Positions 11,909 to 45,773 of a DNA stretch of 64,000 nucleotides are shown here, piece by piece; the first letter of the stretch is position 1, and each line of letters opens with the position of its first letter. Location: contig NIVC01000359.1 in assembly GCA_002269645.1 (NCBI GenBank), forward strand, positions 404,356-468,355. The letters are read 5' to 3'. The notes beneath the pieces are model-generated. The model had not been told where the DNA came from. It searched no databases and was given only the letters and a program-made list of their open reading frames with translations. The position numbers were made by a program, and so were the translations under genes. The stretch is from Macrostomum lignano. Lineage: Eukaryota.

Positions 11909-12742
11909 TCAATGCTCGAACAGGCTGACCAAGGTGCAACCGTTGGCGGTGACAAAGAACTGCACAGCCGGCAGCAGACAGTTGGCAATAGAGGCCAACT
12001 CGGCTGAGGCGTCAAAATTGTCCGGCCCGGCTTTGTTAAACAGCGGCGCGCAGGCGACGGACAGAACCGGCGCCGCTCTGGCCGCGTCGGGGATCAGGGC
12101 GAACAGGCGTCGGTCCTGGCACGGCGCCGGCACGCGCACCATGGCGCCGAGATCAACCAGGCGAACGATGACGCCAGCGGCTGCACCGCTGCTGTCGTTA
12201 TCAACGGCGAGAATTCGAGCCCGATAGCACTGGCCGTCGTCTAGTTTAGCTACGCAGTTGGCGCCAATTCGAATGTCGCCGGCGCGAAGCGGCAGCGCCA
12301 TCTGGCTAAGCTCGCTATACAGGTACTGCAGCCGCGAGTGCAGCGCCTCGAACTGGCCGGCAAATTCGGCCAGCGGCAGAACTCGAACTCGATCGGCCGT
12401 GCCGCCGGGTAGCAACACGGCTGCGCGCCGTTTATTGTCAGTCAGGCGCAGGCTGGCCGGCGCTTCGCTGACATTACAGTCGGCGCCAATTTGAAGCAAC
12501 TTCTTGACGGTGTAGCGCAGCCGGCGCGGGCTGGCAGAGTGGGGGAGGCGCTCGCCGCTGCCGCCGCCATTGGAAGCAGCCTGCAGTACGCCGCTGCGCA
12601 CCCGCTGCCGGTGCTGCTCGCTGAAAAACTCGGCCAACTCCGGCCGGTCCAGCGGCAGGCCGTCTAGCAGGCCGGCCGGGGAGATGAGCTGCACAGGCCA
12701 GGCTGAATCGTCTGCGGACATGCAGCCGAATTCCACCAGCAC
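11909..12742 (-). CDS. Tudor-domain protein, coding exon 2 (second, degenerate Tudor domain, and stop)
   Basis: Acceptor ccctgtccgcccgcag|GTG in phase 0; IGANCVAKLDDGQCYRARI...VRLVDLG is Tudor-like. Confidence 0.82.
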   Translation of the reverse strand: MLVEFGCMSADDSAWPVQLISPAGLLDGLPLDRPELAEFFSEQHRQRVRSGVLQAASNGGGSGERLPHSASPRRLRYTVKKLLQIGADCNVSEAPASLRLTDNKRRAAVLLPGGTADRVRVLPLAEFAGQFEALHSRLQYLYSELSQMALPLRAGDIRIGANCVAKLDDGQCYRARILAVDNDSSGAAAGVIVRLVDLGAMVRVPAPCQDRRLFALIPDAARAAPVLSVACAPLFNKAGPDNFDASAELASIANCLLPAVQFFVTANGCTLVSLFEH

Positions 12743-12774
12743 CTGCGGGCGGACAGGGTGTGGGCAAGGGTTTA

Positions 12775-13880
12775 TTATTATTAGCCTCAGGTAGTTAACT
12801 ATTAGCCTTACAGGTAGCTAATTATTAGCCTCACAGGTAGTTAACTATTAGCTTCACAGGTTGTTAACTATTAGCTTCACAAGTTGTTAACTATTAGCCT
12901 CACAGGTAGCTAATTATTAGCCTCACAGGTAGTTAACTATTAAAATCACAGGTAGTTAACTATTAGCTTCACAGGTTGTTAACTATTAGCCTCACAGGTA
13001 GCTAATTATTAGCCTCACAGGTAGTTAACTATTAAAATCACAGGTAGTTAACTATTAGCTTCACAGGTTGTTAACTATTAGCCTCACAGGTAGCTAATTA
13101 TTAGCCTCACAGGTAGTTAACTATTAAAATCACAGGTAGTTAACTATTAGCTTCACAGGTTGTTAACTATTAGCCTCACAGGTAGTTAGCTATTAGCCTC
13201 ACAGGTAACTATTAGCATCACAGGTAACTATTAGCCTCACAGGTAACTATTAGTCTCACAGGTAGGTAGCTATTAGCCTCACAGGTAGTTAGCTATTAGC
13301 CTCACAGGTAGTTAGCTATTAGCCTCACAGGTAACTATTAGCCGCACAGGTAGTTAGCTATTAGCTTCACAGGTTGTTAACTATTAGCCTCACAGGTAGA
13401 TAGCTATTAGCCTCACAGGTAACTATTAGCCTCACAGGTAACTATTAGCCTCACAGGTAACTATTAGCCTCACAGGTAGTTAGCTATTAGCCTCACAGGT
13501 AACTATTAGCCGCACAGGTAGTTAGCTATTAGCTTCACAGGTTGTTAACTATTAGCCTCACAGGTAGATAGCTATTAGCCTCACAGGTAACTATTAGCCT
13601 CACAGGTAGTTAGCTATTAGCCTCACAGGTAACTATTAGCCGCACAGGTAGTTAGCTATTAGCTTCACAGGTTGTTAACTATTAGCCTCACAGGTAGATA
13701 GCTATTAGCCTCACAGGTAACTATTAGCCTCACAGGTAGTTAGCTATTAGCCTCACAGGTAACTATTAGCCTCACAGGTAGTTACCTATTAGCTTCACAG
13801 GTAGTTAGCTATCAGCCTCACAGGTAGCTAATTATTATCCTCACATGTAGTTAACTATCAGCCTCACATGTAGCTAATTA
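12775..13880. repeat. Intronic minisatellite, mixed 23/19-bp units (aggtagttaactattagcctcac / aggtaactattagcctcac)
   Basis: Direct periodicity filling the Tudor intron. Confidence 0.95.
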
Positions 13881-13986
13881 GTCCTACAAATGGCCACTTA
13901 TTTTATTAGCCCCACTAAATGGCCACTTTTTAGCCGCAAAAAGGTCCTTCATTAGCCATATATACAGTTGCAAGGCAAGAACTAAC

Positions 13987-14781
13987 CTCGCGTTCCATAA
14001 GCCGTTTGGCCAACCAAGCGGCGGCCACCTCGCCGTACTGTCTATGGCACAAACCGGCCAGCTGACAACGATAGGAACGCGGCGGCGGGCCGTCATCTTC
14101 GGCCAAGTCTAGCGGACAACAGCGCAACAGGCAGGCGGGCAGACAGCACCTATTGCCAAAGTCCACAAATTCAACTAAGCCAAATCCGCCAGCCAGTACG
14201 CGCAATAACTTAGCCCGAAAATAACCGGCTTCAGGCGGGAAGTAAGCTACGCAAGCGACGTCGCTGCCAACGTTGTCAATAGGCAGATGAGGCAGAGAGT
14301 CTGCAATCCGACGCAGATAGCTGTGCATGCTGGCTAGCTCAGCGCGACATTCAATCGGTACTAAGCAGATCTGTTTAGTGCCCTGGGTGTGCAGCACAAC
14401 GCACCGAGTCGGCTCGCTTGGTGGAGGCGGCTGACGACAGTAAGCTGTGGCGTAGCCCTGCTGGTTGTCAGGCTTTGAAACGCTATTGTTGTTGTTGCTT
14501 AAACTGCTAATGTTGTTGTTATCGCGATTGCGCGTATCATCTTTGTGACTAGCAAGATCGGCGGAAAGTCCGTTATGGACATTGTTAACATTGTCAACTA
14601 TTCCACTGTCAAAATGTATTGGCGTTGTATTTCTTGGCGTTTCCGATTGCTGCTGCTGCTCAGCTGCTTCCTGCTCCAATTGTTGGCACGATAAACGACG
14701 ACGTTCGAGAAAGTCGCGCCTAACCCGGTAGTATAATCCTCTGCTACTAGTGGAAGACCTTTCGATGATGTTCATGGTCAT
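13987..14781 (-). CDS. Tudor-domain protein, coding exon 1 (low-complexity N-terminus and first Tudor domain)
   Basis: ATG at 14781; CVAYFPPEAGYFRAKLL...LVEFVDFGN; donor GAG|gttagt in phase 0. Confidence 0.85.
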
Positions 14782-17224: not shown

Positions 17225-17390
17225 GAACTGTAACACCCAAGGAGGACCAGTAACACCCAGGGAGGAACTGGAACACCCAATATGGAACTGTAACACCCAC
17301 CAAGGACCTGTAACACCCACCAAGGACTTGTAACACCCACCAAAGACCTGTAACACCCACCAAGAACCTGTAACACCTACTAAGGACCTA
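17225..17390. repeat. Intronic minisatellite, 20-bp unit (gtaacacccaccaaggacct)
   Basis: About 8 degenerate copies next to the donor at 17411. Confidence 0.85.
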
Positions 17391-17411
17391 GCGCAGAAGC
17401 AAGCAACCAAC

Positions 17412-18206
17412 CTGAGGCGAGGCAGACTGCTGGTGCTGTTCCAAGTCCTCGAGCTGCTGCAGATCGCCAGGCCGATGGTCCAGCTGCTGGTGCATGTTCA
17501 AATCTGATTTAGTAACAAAGCTCAACTGGCACTGGTTGCACCGTTTGCCGCTACTAGAAGCAGCAGCAGCAGAAGAAGAATTATCGTCGTCAAAGTGGCG
17601 CTGCAGATGCTGGGTGAACACGCCGGTGAGGCCGCTAGAATCGCCGCCGATCGCCCCAGGTGCGTAGGCCGCGCCAGACGAGCTGGGGAAAGTGATTCGG
17701 ATAGCTTTGAGACAGAGCGGGCACAGCAGGTGTGGCGAGGCGGCGTGCATCCGGCAGAAGTGAGTCAGGATGTCGCGCAGTACGCTAGTCCGGAAGCTGC
17801 ACAGCTGGCAGGCGTAAGGCATCTGCCTGCGCAGGTGGCGAGTCCGCATGTGCCTGGCGAACTGCTCCGTATTGGCGAACTCTCTGTCGCATACGCGGCA
17901 CAGTTTTCGGCCAGCCGGAGTCAGGTGCGAATCCGCTCGATGCTCGGCCAGCTGGTAGTGTCCGGCAAAGGTGGCCGGACAGGCCGGACAGCGGACAATC
18001 TCGGTCGAGCAGTCTTGCAGCAGAGCCGAAACCGACTGCGAAGCCGGCTCAAAATGGCCGAGAATGTGCCGAACTGTGCTCAAATTCGAATATAGAATCT
18101 TTGAGCACAGGTGGCAACGGAAGCGAAGGTCCTGACGTGGCTCCGGCTGGGAGGCCTGCTGGCACTCCTGTCTGGCGAAGTAGTACACGTCTAGGGCCAC
18201 CAGCAC
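17412..18206 (-). CDS. POGZ/ZNF280-like zinc-finger protein, coding exon 3 (C2H2 array)
   Basis: Acceptor ccaacctctcgcag|GTG and donor CAG|gttggt, both phase 0; about six C2H2-type fingers (FRCHLCSKILYSN..HILGH, CPAC, CRVC, CQLC, CPLC, CNQC). Confidence 0.9.
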
Positions 18207-18274
18207 CTGCGAGAGGTTGGAGAATATCATTTCGAATCGATAGGCCTAAAATTACTGCCAGAATCCTTCCTACC

Positions 18275-25449: not shown

Positions 25450-25830
25450 TTTCCAGGATCAACTATGGCTTCTACGGGAATTTCTATGATTGATTATGGC
25501 TTCATGGATATTTCTATGATCGATTATGGGGTTATGGCTTCATGGATATTTCTATGATTGATTATGGCTTCTACGGGAATTTCTATGATTGATTATGGCT
25601 TCTATGGGAATTTCTATGATTGATTATGGCTTCTACGGGAATTTCTATGATTGATTATGGCTTCTACGGGAATTTCTATGATTGATTATGGCTTCTACGG
25701 GAATTTCTATGATTGATTATGGCTTCTATGGGAATTTCTATGATTGATTATGGCTTCATGGATATTTCTGGGATCGACTAGGGCTTTAGTGGAATTTCTG
25801 GGATCCACTAGGGCTTCAGGGAAATTGGTG
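25450..25830. repeat. Intronic minisatellite, 31-bp unit (tgattatggcttctacgggaatttctatgat)
   Basis: Direct periodicity. Confidence 0.92.
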
Positions 25831-25973
25831 AGATAAGCTAAAACTTCAGCGTTCTCAGGAGATTGGTTTCCAAGTTTCCAATTGTTTTGTCTATAAATAA
25901 CAAGATTTATAGAACAGGGAACTTGAGCACATTGAGAACAAATGGCGGCTATAAGATTATAAGTAAAACAAAC

Positions 25974-26976
25974 CTGTATGTCAAACATGCTCGAAGGGTC
26001 GACCTTGATCTTGAACTCGCGGTCAATATATTCGGCAAACTTGCGCTTATTCTGATCCTTAACCTTCATTAGTTCGCGCAAGAAATTCTGATCATTTTGC
26101 AGCGACTCCAGGCCGCGCAGTTTGAACAGATCGGTGACCCAGTCGAATCCAATCTTCTCAGTGATAAGCTCAGATAGGTTGGGGTTGCACAGCAGTAGCC
26201 AACGCCTAGGCGTGATTCCGTTAGTCTTGTTCTGAAACTTCTCTGGCCACATGGCGTAGAAATCGCGGAACACGTCAGATTTGATGAGCTCAGAGTGGAT
26301 CCGGGCAACGCCATTCACAGCGTGGCTGCCAACCACGCACAGGTAGGCCATGTTGATGCGCTTGTCGCCGTCCTCCTCAACTAGGCTCATCCGGCGAACG
26401 CGGTCCATGTCGCCGGGGAATTTTTCCAGCACAAGATGGATGAAGCGCTGGTTGATATCGTAGATAATCTCCAGGTGACGGGGCAGGCAGTACTGCAGGG
26501 TGGCAACTGGCCAGCGCTCCAGAGCCTCGGGCAGGATAGTGTGATTAGTATAGGCGAAGGTCTTCACGCAGATGTCCCAGGCCTCCTCCCATTTCAGGCC
26601 TTCAATGTCAACAAGCACCCGCATGAGCTCGGGTATGGCCAGGCTGGGATGCGTGTCATTCAGCTGGATGGCCACCTTGTCCGGGAAGGCGGTAAAGTCC
26701 GTGCGCACGTGAGCGGTTGAGCCAAATTTCGAGGCCTTGAATCGGCGAATGATGTCCTGCAGGGTGGAGGCGACTAAGAAGTACTCCTGTTTGAGACGGA
26801 GCTCCTTGCCTTCGAAGAAGTTATCGTTTGGATAGAGCACTCGGCTGATGTTCTCGGCTTCGTTGCGGTCGCACACGGCCGAGATGTACTCACCGGAGTT
26901 AAATGAGTGCAGATTGAAGCTCTGCGGAGCTTTGGCTGTCCACAGGCGCAGCGTGTTGCAGTTGTTATTGCCGTAG
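25974..26976 (-). CDS. PYG: Glycogen phosphorylase, coding exon 3
   Basis: Acceptor cccctcccag|C in phase 2; [20 protein letters not shown]; IQLNDTHP; [11 protein letters not shown]; donor CAG|gtttgt. Confidence 0.97.
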
Positions 26977-27094
26977 CTGGGAGGGGTGGAGGGCATTTAT
27001 TATTAGCCAATCAGTTTTTATCACCAAGGATTTCTAAAGTATTCAGATTTTACTTAGGGAGTCAATGGGTTTTTTGTTAGTCAATGTACTGAGG

Positions 27095-31860: not shown

Positions 31861-32501
31861 TGATAGTCTAATCAAATTTGATAAAAATAAAGAAAGAACA
31901 ATTATATATTGACCCTAGCCTAATCTTACTAATTCTTTTAATACTATTATATTATTAGATTATTATTAGTTAATAGTACATATTAGGCCTAAACTTTTTT
32001 TTATTCAATTTTGTTATCTATTATTTCTTATGTTGCTTTACAAATATGCTTTCTAAGAAATGTTCATTTATTTTTATATATATGAATTTTAATTTATTTT
32101 ATCTGCATATATACAAATATACCAATTGAATCCAGGTAAACTTATCAACTTTTTATTCATAAACTATGAGTATGTTGACAAGTTTACCACAGTTTGCACA
32201 GTGTATAACTAATGTGTAGTATAATGAAGTGTATAGAAGTAAAAGATGCAAACAAAAGCAAAATCAATAAAGTTTAAATTTATATGTGTATAAAAAAATA
32301 ATATTTAACATTTTTTGTTAAATTAAAATAAGTGAAACTGATTGACATTGAAATTTATTATGATTAATGGGATCCTAACCACAGACTAATTGCTGTCACC
32401 CCCCTAGTTGTTGACATGAAAGATTATTGGTTTCATTGTTTTCTTAATTTTATTGTATCTTGTATTCTATCATATTTGTACATTGCAGACTGCTAGGTAG
32501 T

Positions 32502-32864
32502 TTTTTTATTAGAGGCAGGGGGGTTGTGTGCACCCTGGCGCACTTTAAGCGACATAGGCACACAACCGGCGAGAGGCATTACTGCCCATTCTGCCGACAC
32601 CCCTGAGCAGGCATACAAGTGCGCGGATACGTACGCAGGCACACACTCACACAGGAGTGTACAGCGGCCCTAATTTTATATTATCGTTAGGCATGTACAC
32701 TTCACTGTGCCTTGGGGGGGTTGGCTCTCAAGGCCGTTAATTGCATGAGCAAAGCCAAGCCAAGATTCCAATTCAGCCCCAAATTAATGTGACTGCACTT
32801 GGAATCGAGCCTAGGTCGCTGGCACACTAGAGCAGCTGCGCTACTGCTAGGCTACGGCCCCCCT
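32502..32864 (-). mobile_element. Full-length tRNA-derived SINE with A-rich tail and 14-bp target-site duplication
   Basis: Minus-strand head GGGGCCGTAGCCTAGCAGTAG (box A) and GGCTCGATTCC (box B, 32811-32801); tail ctaataaaaaa; gactgctaggtagt at both 32488-32501 and 32865-32878. Confidence 0.85.
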
Positions 32865-34480
32865 GACTGCTAGGTAGTGTGCACTATTATCTTTTTTCTG
32901 TCAATTTGGCAGACATTTTAGCAATAGAAGATCCAATGATCTGGCAACAGTAAAGTAAGGTCCTATGCCTAAAAACTAGCATTATAATGATATGGCTTGG
33001 TTCATTGGTTTTATGAATCTATTTTGTGTCTGTCTATTGAAACAGCTGTATATACTATATAATGCTAACAAATTTATAAACAAATAACAAATATAACAAA
33101 TATATTTGAAAATTTCTATTAAAAGATTGATATATTTAGAAAAATAAATCAAACTAATTTTAATGGGTTTTTTCAGTGTAGATTATTTTGAATTGTCCTA
33201 GAATAATTACACATTTAAACTATAAACCTATATAGAATCTTTATTCCTCATGAAATGATAACCACATAAAAAGCAAAGATATTCAATAGACATTAAATTT
33301 GGATTGGAAAACATAAATTCAAAATACTGTAACTCTGTAATTATAAATATAAACAAAATAAAGCAACACTTAGGGCCTAACCATTTCAGAATATTATAAA
33401 ATTTTAAGTTTAATATCCTTTAAGATTTGCAAGGTAATTTTCTATTTAAAACAAAATGGCTATTACTAAAAGGGCTAAGGAAAAATTAAAAAATTGCACC
33501 TTGAAATTGAGAAGTGGGTGCAGTTTAAATGCAATTTCATAACCTATTTTTCCTTTAAAGCCTTATTTGCATTGCCTTTATTGCTTTAAATAATAAAAAA
33601 AGAAATTGCACTTTGAGCTTTAAACTTGCACCCTGAAAGTGAGCATAAAGTGCAATTTTCTAACTCTAGCAAGAAATAGCAAGAAAAAAAACCCTAGTAG
33701 AAATTGTCTGCATCCATATTGCCACTATAGGGCCTATTTATTATAATATTATTTTATAAATATCTTTACTTAAATTATTTATAACTTTTATAATAGTAGA
33801 TAAAATATACTATAATTAAATAGTATAATAGGCAATAACATACTACTTAATATTGACTGGTCTACTTGAAAATTTTTGTTACTACTTGACTCAAGAAGTG
33901 GCACAACCAGGGGGTGTTGGTAGTCGCCTCACACTTTGGATCATGTAGTATATGCCCAAAAATTCAGGCCTTGCACACCAAAATTAGGCGTGCACAGTTG
34001 GCGTGCATCGCTCCTGAGAAGATAGTATGCATGCACACCTGGTATGCACTTTATAAAATTACATGTAAGAGTTATTGTGAAGTAGAAAAAAGATGAAAAA
34101 GTTCATTTTTAAGCTCAAATTTCAAGCTTTCCAGTTTTTTTCAAGCTTGTAAAAGGGCATTTAAACAAATCTTTGCATGTATAAATTTTTTTGCTATAAA
34201 TAGTATTGCCAAAAAAGCATAAAAAGCAACCAAATTACCTGGTAATAAGGGTCTATTACACAATTTAAGTCGCCCCCCTCCTAGGTGGAGACCAGAAAAA
34301 AATCAAAGGCGGGTTGCAAGCGAATTTTCGCCAAAATACAGAGCTGCATTCCCACCGCCCCTCCTTGGGTCCTTACCCTCCAGAATCCCCCAACAAATTT
34401 CTGGTTGCGCTACTGGACCCAAGCTTGGCTCGTAAAAAACCTAGGCAATTATAGACAACATAGACAACAATGAAATTTAC

Positions 34481-34723
34481 CTTAGGATCCTGATCATAGT
34501 AGAACTGCTGAGTTCTAATCCACCGACTGACAAGATGATCCCAAACGGTGTGGGCCAATGAAAGGTAAAAGTCTCTCGGTGTAGCAACATTGCGATCTTT
34601 AACCAACGTGAAATGAAGGTGTCGGTTGAATGTCTTCTTAATATTCGCTACATTTTCTACCTCAGCAATGCCACGTACACTTATGGCACCCTTTCTTTTA
34701 TCAGAGTCCGTCAGAGGGTTCAT
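34481..34723 (-). CDS. PYG: Glycogen phosphorylase, coding exon 1 (regulatory Ser site)
   Basis: [20 protein letters not shown]...[21 protein letters not shown]...QDPK|gtaaat; 243 nt; the five exons join to 2592 nt. Confidence 0.96.
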
Positions 34724-35551
34724 GACAATTAATAATCTGATAGTCGCCAAACAGGTCAAACGATAAAAAACAATTGCAAGCGACTGGGGTTAAGCCTTAA
34801 ATTTTCTATTATTCTGTTTGTTAAATGTGCGCGTTTTTAGTTTCCTTTGAACGTTTTAAACCCTAGAAAATTTAAAACAAAGTTTTCACACTTATGTAGA
34901 GTCGTTTAAAAATAAGGTACAATTAAGAAAAAATAATTTACGTGTTTATTTTACTAAAAATTAATTCTAAGTTTATCTTTAATACGATTAAGGGATGCTT
35001 TTCACGAAGATTTTACCCTCTAGGCCGGAAAATCAATTAGAAATGCAACGCATCAGTCGATCTACTACTGCTCTCTGTTTTTAGTATACTTTATTTGGTA
35101 TACTAAAACTGATTATGGGATAGGAAATAATCCTGTTGAAACACTTCAAATTCTAGAGTTTATTAAAAACGAGCAGAAGTAATCAATAAAAGACTCTACT
35201 GGTCGAGTAAATGTATGAGATGACCTTTATTAGCTTGCAGTATAAGCAATTTTAGACCGATCCACAGCTAACTTTCGGCGCTACCTGACCCGGTGGCCGC
35301 CTTTGGTAGAGATACTGTACACTGACAACTTGACACCGGCTATTTCTTTCGCCGGCTTCATTCGGAACAGTGCCCTACTAAAGGTGAAAGGGATTCTTGA
35401 AGCCCTCAATATATATAGGGTTCAAGGCCGCGCTTGTCAAGCTATCATGAGCGCGACTCCTTCTTACGCCTTTTGCTGGCATACTTATTCCTGGACTTTC
35501 CCCCGGCCTCTGTCAGAGGAGGCCCACCCCGCCGTCTCTCTCGGATCTCTA

Positions 35552-36590
35552 TTATTATTTTTTTAACAGACGCTGGCACAGCAGGGGTCCAGCGAAGCAC
35601 CCGCTTGTGGAAAACAGCTGAGTCCAGCCCAGTTGCAGACTGAGGGGTAAAGCCCAGAGCCTGCAAGTCAGTGAGAAAAGTGTCGGTCAGAGTGATGCAG
35701 CGCTCCTGGCCCCGGCGGCGTCTCCCACAAGGTCGCAGGTCGGCAAGCGGGGGCCCGGTGCCCCGTGTGTAGGCTCGCAGGCAGTGGCCGATCAACATCT
35801 GGCGTCGCCTCTGCAGGGTGCGGCCCAGGGGAGGCACGCGCGCGGGTCCGGGCCGCCAGCTCGGCGTTGCTCACGCGCTCGGGGAACCAGATGCCCAGGG
35901 CATTGCGCAGGAGGCAGGCCTCCAAGCTCGCCTCACGAGTGGCAGTCATGGGAACAGCTTCCAGCTCATATAGGTCAGCACCGTCTCAACTGCCGAGCGG
36001 AAGAGGGCGACCTTCAGGCTGTCGGTGGCGAGCCGGCAGTTGAAGATGGAGCGGAGAAGGTGGGAGGCCCGCCACGCCAGCTACTTGCGGCTGTTGACAA
36101 TGGCATCCGGGTCAGTGACCAGGACGCCCAGATACTTGAACTGGTTGCACGGTGCGATGGATTTGCCGTCCTGTCGAAGCAGCGGTGGAAATTTGGCAAT
36201 GCCAACATGCAGCACCTCTGTCTTGCCGTAGTTGATGTGGAGCCCCACGTGCTTTCCCGAATCGGCGCCCTCTGCGCAGCTTCGGGGTTGCAGCAGGTCA
36301 GCGCCAAGTTGTCGGCGTTGACACAGGGAAAGTGGGAGCTGCGGCGAGGCACCATTTTATAGCTGTCTTCGTCGCGCAGAGCCAGCCGCATGACGTAGTC
36401 GATCAGGATAACGAATAGAAACGGTGATAGGGTGTCACCTTGCAGGACCCCGGAGGTGGTGGCATATTCAGATGTAGGGCCGTGGTCAGTCTGGACAAAA
36501 GCCTTGGACGAGCTGTAGAAGTCCATGATCGCCTGAACCAGCAGCTGAGGAACTCCATGCTGCTGGATGCCAGGCAATGGCCGCCCGGCT
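35552..36590 (-). mobile_element. Degenerate 5'-truncated non-LTR retrotransposon (RTE-like RT and C-terminus)
   Basis: GVPQLLVQAIMDFY...GVLQGDTLSPFLFVILIDYVMR; YADD decayed to NADN; KYLG-like block; LLRNALGIWFPERVSNAEL; several frameshifts; possible aaaaaataataat tail. Confidence 0.85.
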
Positions 36591-37696
36591 GACGGAGGAT
36601 CTGCAAAACTTTTCTGTAAAGGATCTCTCTTGCAAGTTGTAAAACTCATTCTACACCACACGGGGGCATACAGTTACGTAATCATTACTCTGAGCGATCC
36701 TGTCACCACAAAAGTAATGAGTAACGTCGTTTTTTTAGTTTTTTAAACCTAGCAGCAATGTTCGAATTGCAATGTTTGATTCAGAAAATTCCTTAATCCA
36801 GGAGAAGTTGCTTAGTGGCGCAAAATTTGGCTAATTTTGCATATGTTACTCAGTATACGTATATATTCTGTGGTTTCGAAGTTAAAAATGACTCAATCTG
36901 CAGACGAGCATTTTAAGTGTAATAAGTTGCTTTTACCTAATATAGTGCTTTCTGTATAATTAATTCTCTTGATACCGTTAGAACACTTGAGCGTTAGAAG
37001 AATTAAGCAGAAAATTATAGAATATGTTTCATACATCGTCATATTCATACAAAAATACAGAAAGGGCTTGTTTAACCGGAGTTGGAATGCTATAGGCAGG
37101 CATAATTCATCTGTTCCCAAAATAGAAATTTGGGTGTACTGCACAACTATCACATAGAAATTTAGAATACATGTACATTACGTGCATACAGCCTACCCAC
37201 TGTTTGTGTGTCCCGTGACTTGGTCATTACTAGAGAAAAAATGTCTCTCCTTCTCTCTAGTTCTCTCCGGAGACGTGTACTCTCGTCTCCATTCACGAAA
37301 TGGCAGACAAGATAGGAGAGAAGTAGAAGGAGAGAGAGGGCTCCACACAGCAGTGCGTCGACACAAACGTATACACCCACACAACTGTACACCCGCACTA
37401 CAGGTCTGCAAACCCAAATCTTTTATAGGCAGGCTTCACAGGAGTCTCAAGCTTAACTAAATTATCATTTTAGCAAGCTGTTGTTTTGTAATAGAATTAT
37501 TTATTAAACCCCAGCTATTTTGTCACTTTTAGCTCCTTTCAGCTCCTTACTTTACTTGCGGCAATGGCGTCGTGTAAGTAGCTCTTTTGTCTTCGTGAAT
37601 CATTCATGATTAGGACACAAAAATGACTATGAAAGTTCTCCAACACGTGTAATTTCAGCATCCAAAAAGAAACTGGAGTCGCAGGTGTCCCTGGAC

Positions 37697-38716
37697 ATGC
37701 GCGAGAATGACTCAAAACAACTACTGGCCTTTCTGAATTGCGCCAAGTGCCGCGACTTGGCATGCGACGCTGTTGAGACCCATTGCTGCAGAGTGCTGCT
37801 CTGTGCTAAATGCCTTGAACAGCGAGCTAGCCAGTGCCCGAAGTGCTCGGAACCATGCAGCGCCTCGCCGTGCCACCTGGCCAGACGCCTGATCGGCATG
37901 CAGCCATGGTGCTGCTCTGAATGCGGCAAGGAGACGAACCGGTCTGAGCAGACCGACCACCTGCTGATCTGTCCGCAGCGGGTCCGATCGTGTCCAGCCA
38001 GCGGATGCAGCTTCACCGGCCTCACTGACACGTTCATCGATCATCTTATCCAAGAGCACAAAGATGCCCTGATGAAAGAAGTCGACAAGCTGTTCCCACC
38101 AGTTAAGAGACAAAGGCGTTCTTCTGACTCAAGCGAGTCTAGCAACGACTCTGATAGCAGCAGGCGCCGTGCGATGGTCTTGCGCTACCAACGGTACAGA
38201 GAAAGAATGCACGATTCCGCTATTCGGGAGCGCTCGCGCGTCCGTTTAGCTGTCACTGGCAAAAACTACTGCACGGGACCGCTCAACGGACCGCCCTGCA
38301 ACTGTTGCGACGGCAGGTGCGGGCCAGACAACGGGTGCAACTGTGTAGACTGCATGCGTCTCGACCTTGCTAGCTTCAACATCAGCAGGCCGCTAGTGCT
38401 GATTAACCGAGAGGGCGCGGTGGCGCGAATCAGCTTACAGACCGGCAAGTTCTACTGCGGCCGAGCTGTGATGGGCAACGACCCAAGAACTGACGGATTC
38501 TGCGGGCCCAACGACGGCAACAACTGTCACGCCTGTTACAAGCTGGATCAGCAGCTGCGCAATCGCTACGCCGACATTGCCGCAGAGTGGGACCTGGACG
38601 GACTCGGTGTGAGAGACGTCATAGACATGACCGAAACAAACGAAAACGACGACGACGAGTACGATTTTGATGACGACGACGGCCTGGTCGCGATGGGTCT
38701 TGACGTCATCGATTGA
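37697..38716 (+). CDS. Intronless putative E3 ligase: RING-like finger, TRAF/SIAH-type zinc fingers, two Cys-rich repeats and acidic tail (339 aa from ATG 37697)
   Basis: CAKC..CDAVETHCCRVLLCAKC..CPKC; CSECGKETNRSEQTDHLLIC; CPASGCSFTG..FIDHLIQEH; GC-rich open frame in AT-rich flanks. Confidence 0.85.
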   Translation: MRENDSKQLLAFLNCAKCRDLACDAVETHCCRVLLCAKCLEQRASQCPKCSEPCSASPCHLARRLIGMQPWCCSECGKETNRSEQTDHLLICPQRVRSCPASGCSFTGLTDTFIDHLIQEHKDALMKEVDKLFPPVKRQRRSSDSSESSNDSDSSRRRAMVLRYQRYRERMHDSAIRERSRVRLAVTGKNYCTGPLNGPPCNCCDGRCGPDNGCNCVDCMRLDLASFNISRPLVLINREGAVARISLQTGKFYCGRAVMGNDPRTDGFCGPNDGNNCHACYKLDQQLRNRYADIAAEWDLDGLGVRDVIDMTETNENDDDEYDFDDDDGLVAMGLDVID

Positions 38717-39929
38717 GAAAGAGGAGTGAAGTTCTCCAACTTGTAGTACCTCTTTGAATTAATTTTTTAAAGAATGCCTGACGCGGTCGCTTCTAAAGAT
38801 TAAACAAATCTGGCTGGTTTTTTCAAGTTTTTAATTCACAAAACTTTTCCTAATTATGCTGGATCGGCATGCTAATGTAATACACTCAGAATGACGCGAT
38901 TGATGTACATATGAAGATCAAGTCTGGTGCGTCGTTGCCCACCCAATATTCGGATTCTTCCAGTTTGTTATTATAAACCAGAATAATATATATCTTATAT
39001 ACACTATCATGATGAAGAAAGATACCGCAAGATTCGCTGGTTTCGGGGTAAAAACGTAAATATTTTTTTCGGGATAAAAAGTATCGTTCATTGTTTCTTC
39101 TTTTCCCCCACCATTGTATGTTAAAACAACCGTGGTAACTTTTTATCTTCAATAAAATCTTCCAAAACGTCTAATTAAAGCTTTGCTGACCAACTTAAAT
39201 ATATTTTGACAGCAACATAAATTTTGTTTAAGCAAACGATGTAGCGTTGTTGCGAGCGGCGTTATTGGCAGTTAGATCGGGCGGTGAATGACCAGAGATA
39301 CTACTAAAAGTAGGACTTTCAGACACTAGCAATTTCTGAAATGCAAGGCCCAATGGGAGTTTCTGAGACGCCATGGGTTTCAATGGAAACGAATGGATCG
39401 TAGTTGCTGAGATGTCAACAATAGAAAATGGATATGAACTTAAGAGTCAAAATGGAGCCTGAAGCATTGGGTCCCGATTTCTCTAGCCAATCCCTTCATT
39501 TGGAGCCAAATAGCTCCCGTTATGCCGAAAACCCGACCACTTTAGCATTTGGGGATCTCTATGGGGATAAATGGGATAAATAGGGGTTTCATGTGAACTT
39601 AAGGCTTCAGAATGGAGCCTGAGGCGTTGGGTCCCGTTTCTCTACGCCAATCCCTTCATTTGGAGCTTCTCGTAATGCTTAAATGACGAGATGTCCATGA
39701 TGACCAGATGACCAGAGCGTTAGCATAGTACTCAGAACCATCAGTCCCAGGACGACCACACCACAGCCTGTGCTGAAGCGGCCCCTGAAGCGGCCCCTGC
39801 CGCGGGGCATCCGCACGCCGAACCCAGTGGCCCGCCGCCGGCAACGTCAGACGCCCCGACTATGGATCCTCCCGTCTCATCCCCGATCACTGCCTCGTCA
39901 TCTGCTGCACCTCTCATCGACGTCTTCCA

Positions 39930-41400
39930 CGACTGCGATGATGCAGCAGAATCAGTTGCTCATACAACAGCTCACCGCTAATACCCATCCTGCCCCGACA
40001 TCAGCATCGTCGTCCGCTGCGACTGAGCGCGATCCAGCCGCTCTCATCCGATCCAATGTCCTTCAGATGTCCGACATTCGACGGCACGTACCCTGCCGCA
40101 TTCTCCAGGTTTTGGGACGCTTTCCTCTACAGCGTCGACCAATCCAGTCTCAACAACGTCGACAAGTTCGAGGCACTCCGCGGTCTCCTATCCGGCCCCG
40201 CCCTCAGAAAGCTATGCGCCCTCGACACCTGCGAACCCAACGCCTACGCCGAGGCCTGCCGCGTCCTCCAGGCAAACTACGCCGACGCCCAGGAGCAGAA
40301 GAACACCTGCTTCCAATGCCTCCTCGCACTATTCTGCTGCTCCGCCTCCGATTTAGACGAGCTCGAGATCTCCGCCGCCAACAGCGCCCTACCCAGTGAT
40401 CGAAGCCAGTCCACCACTTCTCGCGCGGGCGCCAACCCATCGACTCGTCCCTCAGAATGCTTCGCTCACACCTCCAACCAGCAGCTGCATAAGCCCAGAC
40501 GCCCATCCTACTGTATATTGCGACAGCTCCGACCATGCCACCATGTCTGCTGCAACATTCGCAAGCCCGATGACCGGCTTAAAATAGTTCGGAACAAGAA
40601 CCTTTGCCGCAACTGCCTTCGCCGACACCACACCAGGGACTGCCGCGACAACCGGTGCTGTCTACGTGCGATGCCCCACACCAAGCTCACCTAAGAAAGG
40701 CCAAACGCCCACGTTAATTCAGGTGTTGACGCTGACTCCAAAGAGGCAGCCAACTCCCTAGTCTCTGCCGCAGCCTACGGAGACCTCGTGCCGATCATCA
40801 TGGCTGCCTTCCGGGCCGCTCGGTCGACTGCACAATTCTTCTCGACTCAGGCTGCTCATACTCGCAACTCGACGGCAGTCCAGGCGTCAGATTACTGCGG
40901 ATCTCGGCCGTCGCTGAACAATCACAGCCCTTACCTCCGACTAGCTAGCAGCCCCTATCCATATACCGGCCGTTAAGCTCCCTGAAGATGTCCTTAACAC
41001 CCTCGACAGTGTCAACAACGGCGTCTGCAACCTTCCACCCAACCACGATACAGACGGTACCCTCGACCGCATTCTCGGTGGCGACTTGAACCAGTTACTC
41101 ATCAGCCCTGTCGTTCCTGCCCTCGCTTTTTGACCGACTCTACCGGCCTGCCTGACGCCCTTCGGAGCCATCCTCAACGGTGCTGTCACTGACACGGGTA
41201 CCCGCAGCATCAATAGCTTCCTCGGATCCTCGCAGGCCTCTCAGGTCCTCGTCGCTAACACCTACCTCAAAATCAACAACGATAACCTTCGCTTCAAGCG
41301 GCTCCCCGATCGCATGACTGACCTCAAGTGCTCGGCATCGCGAAGGACGCTGGAAAAACATGGCCTCAAAGACGACGAGCTGACGACGCCTTCTCGCGTC
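39930..41400 (+). mobile_element. Degenerate BEL/Pao LTR-retrotransposon fragment (gag, zinc knuckles, protease; RT absent)
   Basis: PTFDGTYPAAFSRFWDAF...VDKFEALRGLLSG (Pao gag-like); CRNCLRRHHTRDC; ILLDSGCSYS at 40835-40864; TPFGAILNG-like block; frameshifts and stops. Confidence 0.85.
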
Positions 41401-43136
41401 CATTACCAGTGACTCCGATTGCCACCTCTCCGTCTACCTGCCATTCAAAGACGGCAATGCACTTCTTCCATCAAACTTCGGCCAGGCCTTTTGGCCTTTC
41501 CTCAGGCTACTCACCGACGTCGTATGAGCCTTCCCGAGCGCGACTAGAGGGTCCTGAAAAAAACACAATGAAAAAAATTAAACTCAAAATAACGCAGGCC
41601 AAGGTTTCAAAACACAGCAGTTTTTTTTAAATTGAATCATGAAATCAACATTTGTCTACGGTTAAAATGTACAATTTTAATATGGCCAAACGGGTATAAA
41701 TAGATTATAGTTCCGTTTATTTTAGTCTATAGTCTGAAGCATAAGCTTCAGTCAAGATCGAGTCCTCTCTTCTTTTGCTTCAGACCAAAGAAATAAATAA
41801 CCGGTAATAACCTATAATATATATTTACATATATACAGAATTCTGTATTTTCAGAATTCTGTATTTCCGAAGCCAGCACAAGCCAGCACGCACAGGTACG
41901 AATACAATTAGTAGTGCGACTGCCCCACAGACTCTGGCGGAATCCAACAACACCTTGTTTGGTAACTGCACACACGCTATGCTGCTGTTTTACAAGTGGC
42001 TCGCATAATAACGCATTTCTATATTCCATTGACAAGGCAGGAGTTTGAGTTTCTCCTATATTTACAGCTCTTGCATGCATGCATAGTTAGTTAGGCAACC
42101 GCCTGGTTCGGTCGGTCACGGCTCCCAGGAAATGCACATGTATATTAAAGCGCTCGTTCCGCTTCAGTAGAGCACGCTGCTGCAACCAATGTGCTACAGG
42201 TAGGTTCCCCCTTCCCTGGCTGCAATTTCACTTGCTTTCGAAAAAGAAATTTTCTGATTTGCTAAAGCCAAACTCATTTGCATGCACCTTTTTATTTGAA
42301 GGCCGCAACTCTACCAAAAGTCGGAACTGTTTCGCATTCCCGAGGTAGCGAAAGAATCCATAGCGACTTTGACTACTCCTTCGAAGACTTCACGACATTA
42401 GTCGCTTTAACGACTAATCCAGGTAAGATAGTGATCAATTCGATATTTTATTATAAAAATATAAAAAGCCTGGTAAATTTATTGACAGGTAGCGATTTAC
42501 CTGAATTGGTAAGAAGCATGCCAATTATTAGCCTAGCTAAAAGGAATCAATCAAGCAAATATTAAGGCTTTTAATTTTTCTGGGTCATCGAAATTTCTGA
42601 TTCGTCTTTAAAAAACAACAAAAATAATAATTGTTTCTTTTTTGCTAAAATAGAAGCTTTTGGGCTTTGAAAGCAATTTTTAACCAAATTTGCATCAATT
42701 AGTTATAAATTAATCTCCATACAGATGGTACATTAGCATAGATAGAACGCTTTTCTAGAGGTTTTAAAGATTCTGCTTCAGTTTACGTTGCTTAACCTTC
42801 AATTAAAAAAATTTTTAAAGTAGGTCACATTTTTGTTTAAATTAATTAAATTGCAGACAAAGAGAAGTAGACACCAAGGGTAACGGAGTTGGGTAAGCAT
42901 TTTTATTTCATATTGTGCGTTTCGGGCACTATTTCTATATGCATTTTGCGGACGTTTGTAACGCTAAACGAATTCATAGCCGGCTACAGGAACTTCATCA
43001 TCTTGAGCAGCTATTTCGTTATTCTTGTTGGCAAACTCAACGCAATACTCGTCTAGTAACTCTTCATTGGCGCTAGCATACTCAATGTCTGTCCCTGTCA
43101 CCACTGTTTAGAACAGGACAACCTTTCATATTTGCA

Positions 43137-44321
<1,185 letters not shown>

Positions 44322-44326
44322 CAAAG

Positions 44327-44983
44327 GCTGTTCGCGGTTTCTGCTCAATGACTTGGACGACAAGATCGACAACCAGTTTCTGGCTGATTTTCTTTCGGGA
44401 CTGCTGAAACCCGTTCGGGAGGAATTCAGGTCTGTGAAGAGGTGGAGCACAGAGAATCTTCTGTCAATTGGCATTAATACTGTCCAGGACCGACGACCCA
44501 GTCCTAGTGAGTATCTCAACATCACAAATTGCATAGCTGAGCAGACTGGGCGCCTTATAACGAGCCGACTGGAGCCACTGCCGTTTAGGATGAGAAATAT
44601 GAATTTTTCCTCGAGTATAACCCTTCGCAAAAATATTCTTGACGTCGTGAGCGCCATCCAAGCTGTCTCAGAGCTTGCCCAACAATTCATTCAAGAAAAG
44701 AGTCGGGCTGCAAAGAATCTGGAGCTACCGGATCCGCTCAACATGAACTTGACTCGTCAGCAGCTGTTCTTTGTGAACATCGTTCAGAGTCTGTACTCAG
44801 CTAGAAGAGTTCGTTCTATGCACTATTACCTGTAATACGAGCGTACGCAACGCGAAGCCTATGGCAAGCGAGAAAAGCATTCGTGCGATAAAGCAGATAA
44901 TCAACACGAACGACTTTGCGAAAGCTTTCAATTGTCCAGCTGGCGGGCCTATGAACCTGATTAGAAAATGCGTACCTTGGTAG
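44327..44983 (+). pseudogene. M13 (neprilysin/ECE)-like C-terminal segment, zinc ligands lost, one frameshift near 44792
   Basis: TLRKNILD for TLGENIAD; LPDPLNMNLTRQQLFFVNIVQSL; after the frame change, NTNDFAKAFNCPAGGPMNLIRKCVPW-stop, the typical M13 end; upstream exons not resolved. Confidence 0.7.
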
Positions 44984-45773
44984 GAAATTGCCAAAATGCT
45001 TGGAAGAAAAAAATGATCTCGGCTGACTGACTGTAATGAACGCGCAACCGAGAGATACGTGTATTATTCAAGAGTGCCAAAAAGCATATTATATAGAGGG
45101 GCGAGGGGGGCTGAGCAATCGATAGCAACGTACATGATTGGGGGACGGGGCGGCTGGGGCGCAGATGTGCGTACAATAAATTATAGTTACAAGTGCATCA
45201 CTGACACTGACCAGAGTAACGAAATCTATACAACCTTAGCAGAGACTTTTTTCCTTGAGTTTTTTCACACCTTAAAGGAAATAGATTTATGACAATTAGC
45301 TCGTAGCCCGCATTAGGCGAGAAACTTGTACTGCTTGAGTATGACGTGAGATAATTGACTAGGAAAAGTTTTTAGTGTCTGCATGTGTGACGAAATTGCA
45401 AATTGTACTCTAGCTTAAGCTTTAGGCAACTTACCACCGCTACGCTCGTACATGTAATATCTGTCAATTTCCAAAGATCAATTTCCAACTCACTTGTCCT
45501 ACTAGTGAATCAGAATTTACCGAGGCCCCCAAGGGGGGAAACGAATGTGCTAGTCCACGTATACTAAATGAGAATAGTAATAATGATGAAGTTCTTACAA
45601 CAACAATAAATAAAAGGTCAAAAAACAGGGTTGGGAGGTCCCTCAATAGTGGGAATGCTAAAACTTACCTTATTCGAAACTGCGATATTGTGAGATTGAA
45701 AAATATTGCCAGCTCCGTAATGCTATCTGTATCTGATGTGTTTCTGTTGTATTTTCGCCGCCTGACAGGCACC

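Follow-up and report, generated by a model that had tools for sequence, protein, structure and literature searches.

A widespread Cys-rich repeat pair without a Pfam name or PDB match follows a TRAF/SIAH-type RING-zinc-finger scaffold in Macrostomum lignano

The window analysed here is a stretch of 64,000 nucleotides from the flatworm Macrostomum lignano (contig NIVC01000359.1), in which we identified a gene at 37564–38716 of the plus strand composed of two exons and encoding a protein of 355 residues. This protein combines a RING finger and a double zinc finger of the SIAH/TRAF type with a C-terminal pair of Cys-rich repeats, referred to below as the module. The repeat pair is a widespread eukaryotic domain family without a name in Pfam or the PDB libraries searched, and the new part of the protein is this uncatalogued module on a known TRAF/SIAH-type RING-zinc-finger scaffold. 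The gene is composed of the following features, with residues numbered in the open reading frame (ORF) at 37685–38716 of the plus strand.

37564–37573, plus strand: exon 1 (ATGGCGTCGT), 10 nt, which carries the start codon
37574–37658, plus strand: intron of 85 nt, GTAAGT...TTTCAG
37659–38716, plus strand: exon 2 with the remaining coding sequence; TGA stop at 38714–38716
37739–37846, plus strand: atypical RING finger, residues C19–C54, C-x2-C-x10-H-C-C-R-x3-C-x2-C-x7-C-x2-C
37916–38080, plus strand: SIAH/TRAF-type double zinc finger, residues 78–132, Pfam PF21361 (Sina_ZnF)
38081–38218, plus strand: basic/Ser-rich linker with PPVKRQRR, residues 133–178, lineage-specific and predicted to be flexible
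38219–38380, plus strand: repeat unit A, residues 179–232, with a degenerate hairpin and GKNYC...C-x-C-C-x3-CGP-x3-C-x-C-x2-C-x2-LD
38393–38584, plus strand: repeat unit B, residues 237–293, LINREGAVARISLQTGKFYCGR...DGFCGPNDGNNCHAC, with a conserved RY closing helix that extends to residue 300
38585–38713, plus strand: acidic C-terminal tail, 43 residues, net charge −17, predicted to be disordered

Joining of positions 37573 and 37659 across the canonical GT-AG sites restores the N-terminus MASSSKKK..., and the spliced product begins MASSSKKKLESQ. The same N-terminus and the same two-exon model belong to an annotated M. lignano protein of 355 residues (BOX15_Mlig009760g1, hereafter P0001), with which the window protein shares 98% identity. 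The locus of P0001 on contig NIVC01002250.1 also contains the intron, and aligns with window positions 31950–45000 at 98–99% identity over ~13 kb, flanks included. Because the identity extends this far beyond the gene, we regard this second locus as a homeolog or allele of the one in the window. Such a near-identical second neighbourhood fits the duplicated or homeologous genome of M. lignano. The two coding sequences differ by 17 synonymous and 8 non-synonymous changes, corresponding to a dN/dS of 0.13 over the whole coding sequence and 0.17 within the module. Since both copies are intact and dN/dS is this low, the gene is selectively maintained under purifying selection, which lends its function indirect support. 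A search of all six frames of the 64-kb window with a hidden Markov model of the module identified no further copy.

The two repeats start with GKNYC at 38258 and with GKFYC at 38444, 62 codons further on, and the KLD of the second ends at 38548. A single comparison of units A and B gave 42% identity over 48 residues (E 4e-8). The original prediction had described this pair, its spacing and four shared Cys, and had placed it behind RING-like and TRAF/SIAH-type fingers and a Ser-rich linker with PPVKRQRR and ahead of an acidic tail; both quoted peptides are in frame in the ORF at the positions given for them, and every one of the surrounding elements was recovered. The shared Cys correspond to C196, C212, C220 and C223 in unit A and C258, C273, C281 and C284 in unit B, and all are invariant in an alignment of 54 homologous sequences. 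The repeat unit itself exceeds the span originally described, as it starts ~15–20 residues earlier with a [LV]-N-x2-G-x2-A-R-x-G hairpin. The first part of the unit consensus is this hairpin continued by x2-G-K-[FY]-Y-C-G and then a variable loop, and the second part reads D-G-x-C-G-P-x-[ND]-G-x-x-C-x2-C-x2-L-D. The loop that joins YCG to CGP is variable in both length and sequence, whereas the Cys, Gly, Pro and Asn positions of the unit are invariant.

Unit A features eight invariant Cys and unit B four, sometimes five, conserved ones. In unit B, N241 and G244 are also invariant across the 54 sequences and Y295 is nearly so. The same two kinds of unit are evident among 366 distinct units extracted from profile matches, 176 of which contain at least seven Cys and 174 at most five. 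Both units of the window protein bear the YCG and CGP signatures, and the window reaches E 3.7e-51 against the profile. Based on this signature, we propose the name YCG-CGP for a family defined by N-x2-G...G-x-[FY]-Y-C-G and C-G-P-x2-G-x2-C-x2-C with four invariant Cys, in which units A and B usually lie as a pair at the C-terminus and an R-Y helix closes the pair.

An AlphaFold2 model of the 128-residue module reached a predicted local distance difference test (pLDDT) score of 85.2 and a predicted template modelling (pTM) score of 0.79, which indicates that the two units are predicted to form one compact, two-lobed body. In a separate AlphaFold2 model of the full-length protein, built on 54 homologues, pLDDT is 85–94 over unit A and 86–95 over unit B. 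Each predicted unit combines short strands with a long loop and with a helix opening at the C-x2-C motif, and the R-Y helix closes the module.

Our search for a known domain covered Pfam-A, PHROG-type libraries, PDB sequences and, with Foldseek, the structures in PDB and BFVD. The window module matched no Pfam family at E ≤ 10, and 19 module sequences compared at the same threshold produced three unrelated single-member matches only (E 0.15–3.4). PDB sequences produced nothing but chance matches (E ≥ 0.1), whether searched with the profile of the pair or with that of a single unit. Among the hits of the PDB sequence searches, those to antibody ‘YYCAR’ segments were attributed to chance and those to SIAH1 and C2H2 fingers fall on the N-terminal fingers of the query. 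The confidently modelled module likewise had no significant structural match, with a best E of 2.6 and a TM score ≤ 0.2 in PDB and a best E of 1.5 in BFVD; Foldseek has low power on domains this small, and the novelty of the fold is not proven by this result. Recurring Foldseek matches to SBP-domain and PHD structures (E 6–9, probability ≤ 0.03) were dismissed as chance. GTDB prokaryote genomes and IMG/VR yielded pattern matches only, none of which was confirmed by tblastn.

Existing annotation offers little guidance to the module. Nearly all of the short module-only proteins listed have no precomputed Pfam assignment, and the few annotated entries carry only RING or Sina_ZnF; their source names are ‘Uncharacterized’, ‘hypothetical’ or ‘unnamed protein product’. 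Three longer homologues (P0003, P0018 and P0020) bear the conflicting automatic names ‘SINA-like 4’, ‘NRDP1’ and ‘herc2’. Annotation transfer in this family is thus unreliable, and no automatic name reflects the C-terminal module. Motif strings retrieved only antibody or otherwise unrelated papers from 8.3 million full texts, and the domain combination retrieved none. It is quite unlikely that the repeat has already been named elsewhere, be it in SMART, PROSITE, CDD, PANTHER, ECOD, AFDB clusters or the journals, such that the architecture alone would be new. Small zinc fingers are often classed by structure, as treble clefs or zinc ribbons, without strong sequence models, and a name of this kind would fit the results above; the lack of any Pfam match at the permissive threshold, the uncharacterised state of the module-only proteins in their sources and the silence of the full texts on both the motif strings and the locus tags of the gene argue against it. 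The original prediction could not assign the repeats to a named family, in agreement with what these searches found.

The pair profile was searched against 1.84 billion cluster representatives and identified 747 clusters at E ≤ 1e-3, of which 305 reached E ≤ 1e-10 and 65 reached E ≤ 1e-30. Named animal sources of these matches include, besides the flatworm Macrostomum, the brachiopod Lingula, the mollusc Lottia, the rotifers Adineta, Rotaria and Didymodactylos, the cnidarians Hydra and Rhopilema, and the echinoderm Amphiura. Outside animals, the named sources are the chytrid fungus Zopfochytrium and the ciliates Stylonychia and Halteria, and the other matches come from eukaryote-like metagenome contigs. 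The named matches include no vertebrate member. A search with the single-unit profile returned only 25 short unnamed proteins and contributed no new taxa or names.

Among the 116 members of at least 230 residues, a RING model was matched in 41, Sina_ZnF in 29 and zf-TRAF in 8. The order RING, SIAH-type zinc finger and module is the dominant architecture and is conserved in many eukaryotes. The module also follows TPR-RING-zinc-finger and Ras-RING-zinc-finger combinations, and a protein from Amphiura carries an N-terminal RING followed by five tandem units. Elsewhere, arrays of 3–6 units precede a C-terminal RING. Further partners are two PHD fingers and Roc/Ras GTPase regions, as well as a Ser/Thr kinase and astacin proteases, which the module follows. 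A MACPF_SNTX protein bears the module at its C-terminus, and the module also follows a ubiquitin-like domain that Pfam matches weakly (E 1.8e-4, under the curated cut-off). Many proteins of 120–220 residues contain the module alone. Its position is mostly C-terminal, with most members ending 15–17 residues past the last Cys. Within Macrostomum, an alpha-kinase (BOX15_Mlig023966g1, P0017; Alpha_kinase E 1.6e-42) has a C-terminal module that is 62% identical to that of the window protein. In a metagenome/rotifer-like protein of 390 residues (P0033), the two-unit module is tandemly triplicated together with its preceding linker, so the A+B pair acts as a duplicable unit, besides the arrays of A-type units found elsewhere.

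Several other partners were considered and set aside. P0025 resembled a HECT protein on visual inspection and the name ‘herc2’ is attached to a homologue from Stylonychia, but a link to HECT was dropped because P0025 has no Pfam or PDB match. Similarly, a B-box (P0034), MORN (P0139) and a ZZ finger (P0142) seen by eye are not claimed, as they received no support from Pfam at E ≤ 0.01.

This survey of taxa and partner domains divides the broader claim of the original prediction, in which the repeats would define a possibly undescribed class of E3 ligase. The combination of RING, SIAH-type zinc finger and module is indeed conserved, whereas the module does not define such a class, as it also occurs on kinases, astacins and GTPases and on its own; it is a mobile, promiscuous domain and not the hallmark of one type of ligase.

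The same spread bears on a doubtful alternative, that of a homotypic domain for oligomerisation or adaptor functions, comparable to the death fold, the SIAH DIMER domain or TRAF-C, by which the module would join module-bearing effectors to each other and not bind a substrate. RING E3 ligases of the TRAF/SIAH type generally function as dimers. The module is distributed as adaptor domains typically are, with TPR and GTPase scaffolds, with kinase, astacin, MACPF and RING effectors and in many small stand-alone proteins, and the part of SIAH that is missing from the window protein includes the dimerisation domain (PMC5547486). Arrays of 3–6 units within one chain are, however, more typical of multivalent ligand binding, and units A and B are already predicted to pack in cis, as judged from the pTM of the module.

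The composition of the module also suggests what may hold it together. Because its Cys are invariant in sets of four and its partner domains are cytosolic, we infer that they bind zinc, with one ion held in each unit by the four universal Cys and a second in unit A by the four additional Cys of that unit, so that a module would hold 3 Zn. The high density of Cys and the astacin and MACPF fusion partners, which are often extracellular, could instead suggest a secreted repeat of the knottin-like or EGF-like kind whose Cys form disulfides. We consider this very improbable. Neither the window protein nor the members with astacin or MACPF domains show an N-terminal signal peptide, and the partners that dominate (RING, SIAH zinc finger, kinases, Ras/Roc, PHD and ubiquitin-like domains) are cytosolic or nuclear. 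The conserved Cys, which are grouped in fours with a C-x2-C motif opening a helix, are likewise at odds with it. The cytosolic partners and the lack of a visible signal peptide are the reasons for which zinc is favoured over disulfides.

The scaffold that precedes the module is recognisable by both sequence and structure. The double zinc finger matches Sina_ZnF (PF21361) at E 9.6e-6 and 26.4 bits, under the curated cut-off of 32, and this is the sole Pfam match of the ORF; in homologues the same model reaches E values down to 6e-12 and passes the cut-off. By sequence, SIAH1 chains in PDB match the double finger at E 0.002, in alignments that end at residue 128. Its residues C80, H92, C96, C103, C108, H120 and H125 are nearly invariant across the 54 sequences. 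For the full-length model, the best match in PDB was the N-terminus of TRAF6 (3hcs_A, E 2.8e-6 over 151 columns), and further Foldseek matches comprised TRAF5/6, RNF125, the RING-ZnF1 region of SIAH1 (9g0l, E 6e-4), LNX and TRAF2; 7l3l, 5vo0 and 3knv are the further TRAF entries among them. None of these matches is attributable to the repeat module, because all those listed are RING or RING-plus-finger structures. In line with the original prediction, no MATH domain or SIAH substrate-binding domain (Sina/SBD) was found anywhere in the ORF by Pfam at E ≤ 10. A TRAF-type coiled coil followed by MATH/TRAF-C was not found either, the last 165 residues being occupied by the module and the acidic tail.

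The RING of the window protein lines up with the C3HC4 RING of the family, whose consensus over the 54 sequences is C-x-[IV]-C ... C-C-H-x3-C-x2-C ... C-P-x-C-R. It is modelled with pLDDT of 95–98 (92–98 for the RING plus fingers) and matches the RINGs of TRAF6, TRAF2, RNF125 and TRIM21 in Foldseek. Three of its key positions are replaced. In RING E3 ligases, the first of these makes the main contact with the ubiquitin-conjugating enzyme (E2), and the E2–ubiquitin conjugate is activated by the last, the linchpin. At the E2-contact position the window copy has Lys, where 43 of the 54 sequences have Ile or Val; Lys is found here only in the two Macrostomum paralogs. The position of the fourth ligand is occupied by Arg in place of the His found in 33 of the 54, with a His located three residues before it (THCCR). 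The residue after the last Cys is Ser, whereas 44 of the 54 carry Arg or Lys. The paralog P0002 shares the Lys at the E2-contact position and retains the His ligand.

Given these residues, the window protein may be a weak ligase, a partner-dependent ligase, a pseudo-ligase or a non-catalytic adaptor. Loss of the RING has a precedent in vertebrate SIAH3, which is without a functional RING (PMC5547486).

Between scaffold and module, the linker is modelled at low confidence, with means of pLDDT over ten-residue blocks of 49–66 across residues 141–180 and values < 50 at 145–154 and 178–181. It could not be aligned with homologues, and its basic part has a net charge of +7. In the acidic tail, block means drop from 76 to 42, and residues 321–343 are nearly all < 50. 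The tail is confined to the window gene and its near-identical homeolog, being absent from P0002 and from other homologues. Both the linker, which resembles a nuclear localisation signal (NLS), and the tail are thus specific to Macrostomum and not features of the family. As a speculation, the tail could act as an intramolecular mimic of an acidic ligand or as an auto-inhibitor.

These charges bring in a further explanation, a special case of a binding role that we consider unlikely, namely that the module is a finger for polyanions (nucleic acid, poly-ADP-ribose or phospholipid) or for ubiquitin and ubiquitin-like proteins, making the window protein a nuclear or chain-reading factor. Such a use would be analogous to that of NZF, UBZ and RanBP2-type fingers. 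It would agree with the mean module charge of +6.5 in 19 family members, with the fusions to PHD fingers, RINGs and the weakly matched ubiquitin-like domain, and with the NLS-like linker and a tail that could imitate such a ligand. However, the module of the window protein is charged only about +2, a nucleic-acid role is hard to square with the astacin and MACPF fusions, and the nucleic-acid- or ubiquitin-binding fingers in Pfam gave no match at E ≤ 10.

We favour the view that the module is probably a zinc-stabilised target-recognition domain on a TRAF/SIAH-type RING-zinc-finger scaffold, in which it would take the place of MATH or SBD. This role is suggested by its C-terminal position and by its shuffling among unrelated effectors. 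In this mechanism, a compact two-copy domain with units of 55–60 residues, placed after a flexible linker, would replace the beta-sandwich with which TRAF and SIAH proteins hold their substrates, and would tether a partner to the fused effector, which in the window is the RING-zinc-finger scaffold. The conserved Cys, Gly, Pro and Asn residues would form the scaffold of each unit, and specificity would come from the variable loop that separates YCG from CGP. Binding may be multivalent, as the tandem arrays suggest, and the presence of closely related modules on a RING scaffold and an alpha-kinase in Macrostomum fits a target shared by the two.

A bolder form of this proposal, which we put forward tentatively, is that YCG-CGP represents a new fold of eukaryotic ligand-recognition or adaptor domain, interchangeable with MATH and PRYSPRY. 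It would direct ubiquitin ligases and kinases, but also metalloproteases, GTPases and pore-forming MACPF proteins, to one shared class of target. One possibility is that it serves as a sensing or adaptor module of innate-immune or stress signalling in invertebrates and protists; the patchy distribution and the many copies among the named rotifer and ciliate matches would fit such a role.

Several observations weigh against the favoured reading. No Pfam RING model matches the window copy, even at E ≤ 10. The ligase activity of this copy is uncertain, as its RING has replacements at the E2 contact, at a His ligand and at the linchpin. The putative assignment of Cys to zinc is drawn from sequence conservation and the proposed binding role from position and domain shuffling, and the many stand-alone module proteins would also fit an adaptor or oligomerisation role. 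In addition, the locus tags of the gene match nothing in the full texts searched.

The remaining content of the window lies apart from the module finding. Retroelement debris is present on both sides of the gene, including an ORF of the gag-like kind known from BEL/Pao-type elements, and the glycogen phosphorylase, Tudor-domain and C2H2 genes have no relation to the module.

36014–36661, minus strand: reverse-transcriptase fragment (RVT_1, E 7.5e-5)
40056–40694, plus strand: DUF1759 gag-like ORF (E 4.4e-6)
25707–26996, minus strand: glycogen phosphorylase exon (PF00343, E 4.5e-146)
11909–14781, minus strand: two Tudor-domain ORFs
17388–18230, minus strand: C2H2 zinc-finger ORF

If the favoured reading is correct, the module would add a recognition domain to the ubiquitin and signalling toolkit of eukaryotes, and the same module would also aim kinases, proteases and a pore-former. 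It is present in at least ~750 clusters from animals, a chytrid and ciliates, yet it has neither a Pfam model nor a solved structure. Several hundred proteins now called ‘hypothetical’, including some with the wrong names NRDP1, HERC2 or SINA-like, would be better annotated once the domain is defined, and the module could possibly serve as a compact, engineerable binding scaffold. No principle is overturned, as this is the discovery of a domain and not of a new kind of system.

Among known systems, the small zinc fingers of the NZF/RanBP2, UBZ, PHD, ZZ and B-box types resemble the repeats in being short Cys4-type units that occur singly or in tandem on E3 ligases and signalling proteins. Their Pfam models did not match the module at E ≤ 10, and the module differs from them in its C-x14-17-C-x7-C-x2-C spacing, in its YCG and CGP signatures and in the second set of four Cys in unit A (C-x-C-C ... 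C).

The TRAF proteins share the order of a RING followed by TRAF-type fingers, and the N-terminus of TRAF6 is the best structural match of the full-length model. TRAFs have four to five zinc fingers, whereas the window protein has two and lacks both the coiled coil and MATH/TRAF-C. With the SINA/SIAH family, the window protein shares a predicted RING fold directly followed by a dual SIAH-type zinc finger, recognised by PF21361, by SIAH1 sequence and by the 9g0l structure, and ‘SINA-like 4’ is the name that one database gives to a homologue. It differs in its RING, which has substitutions at the fourth ligand, the E2 contact and the linchpin. Of the four domains by which the SINA/SIAH family is defined (PMC5547486), it also lacks SBS and DIMER, in whose place a flexible linker and the repeat pair are found.

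The position of the module invites comparison with MATH and PRYSPRY (B30.2), as it occupies the equivalent C-terminal slot, and it is on the basis of this position that we liken it to a recognition domain. MATH is C-terminal in TRAFs and meprin-type astacins, and PRYSPRY in TRIMs and stonustoxin-type MACPF proteins. Both are metal-free beta-sandwiches of 130–200 residues, whereas the module is a pair of small Cys-rich units without sequence or fold similarity to either (Pfam at E ≤ 10, Foldseek on PDB). The natural comparison is therefore one of a common RING-zinc-finger chassis that carries MATH in the TRAFs, SBD in SIAH and, in the window protein, a small putative zinc module.

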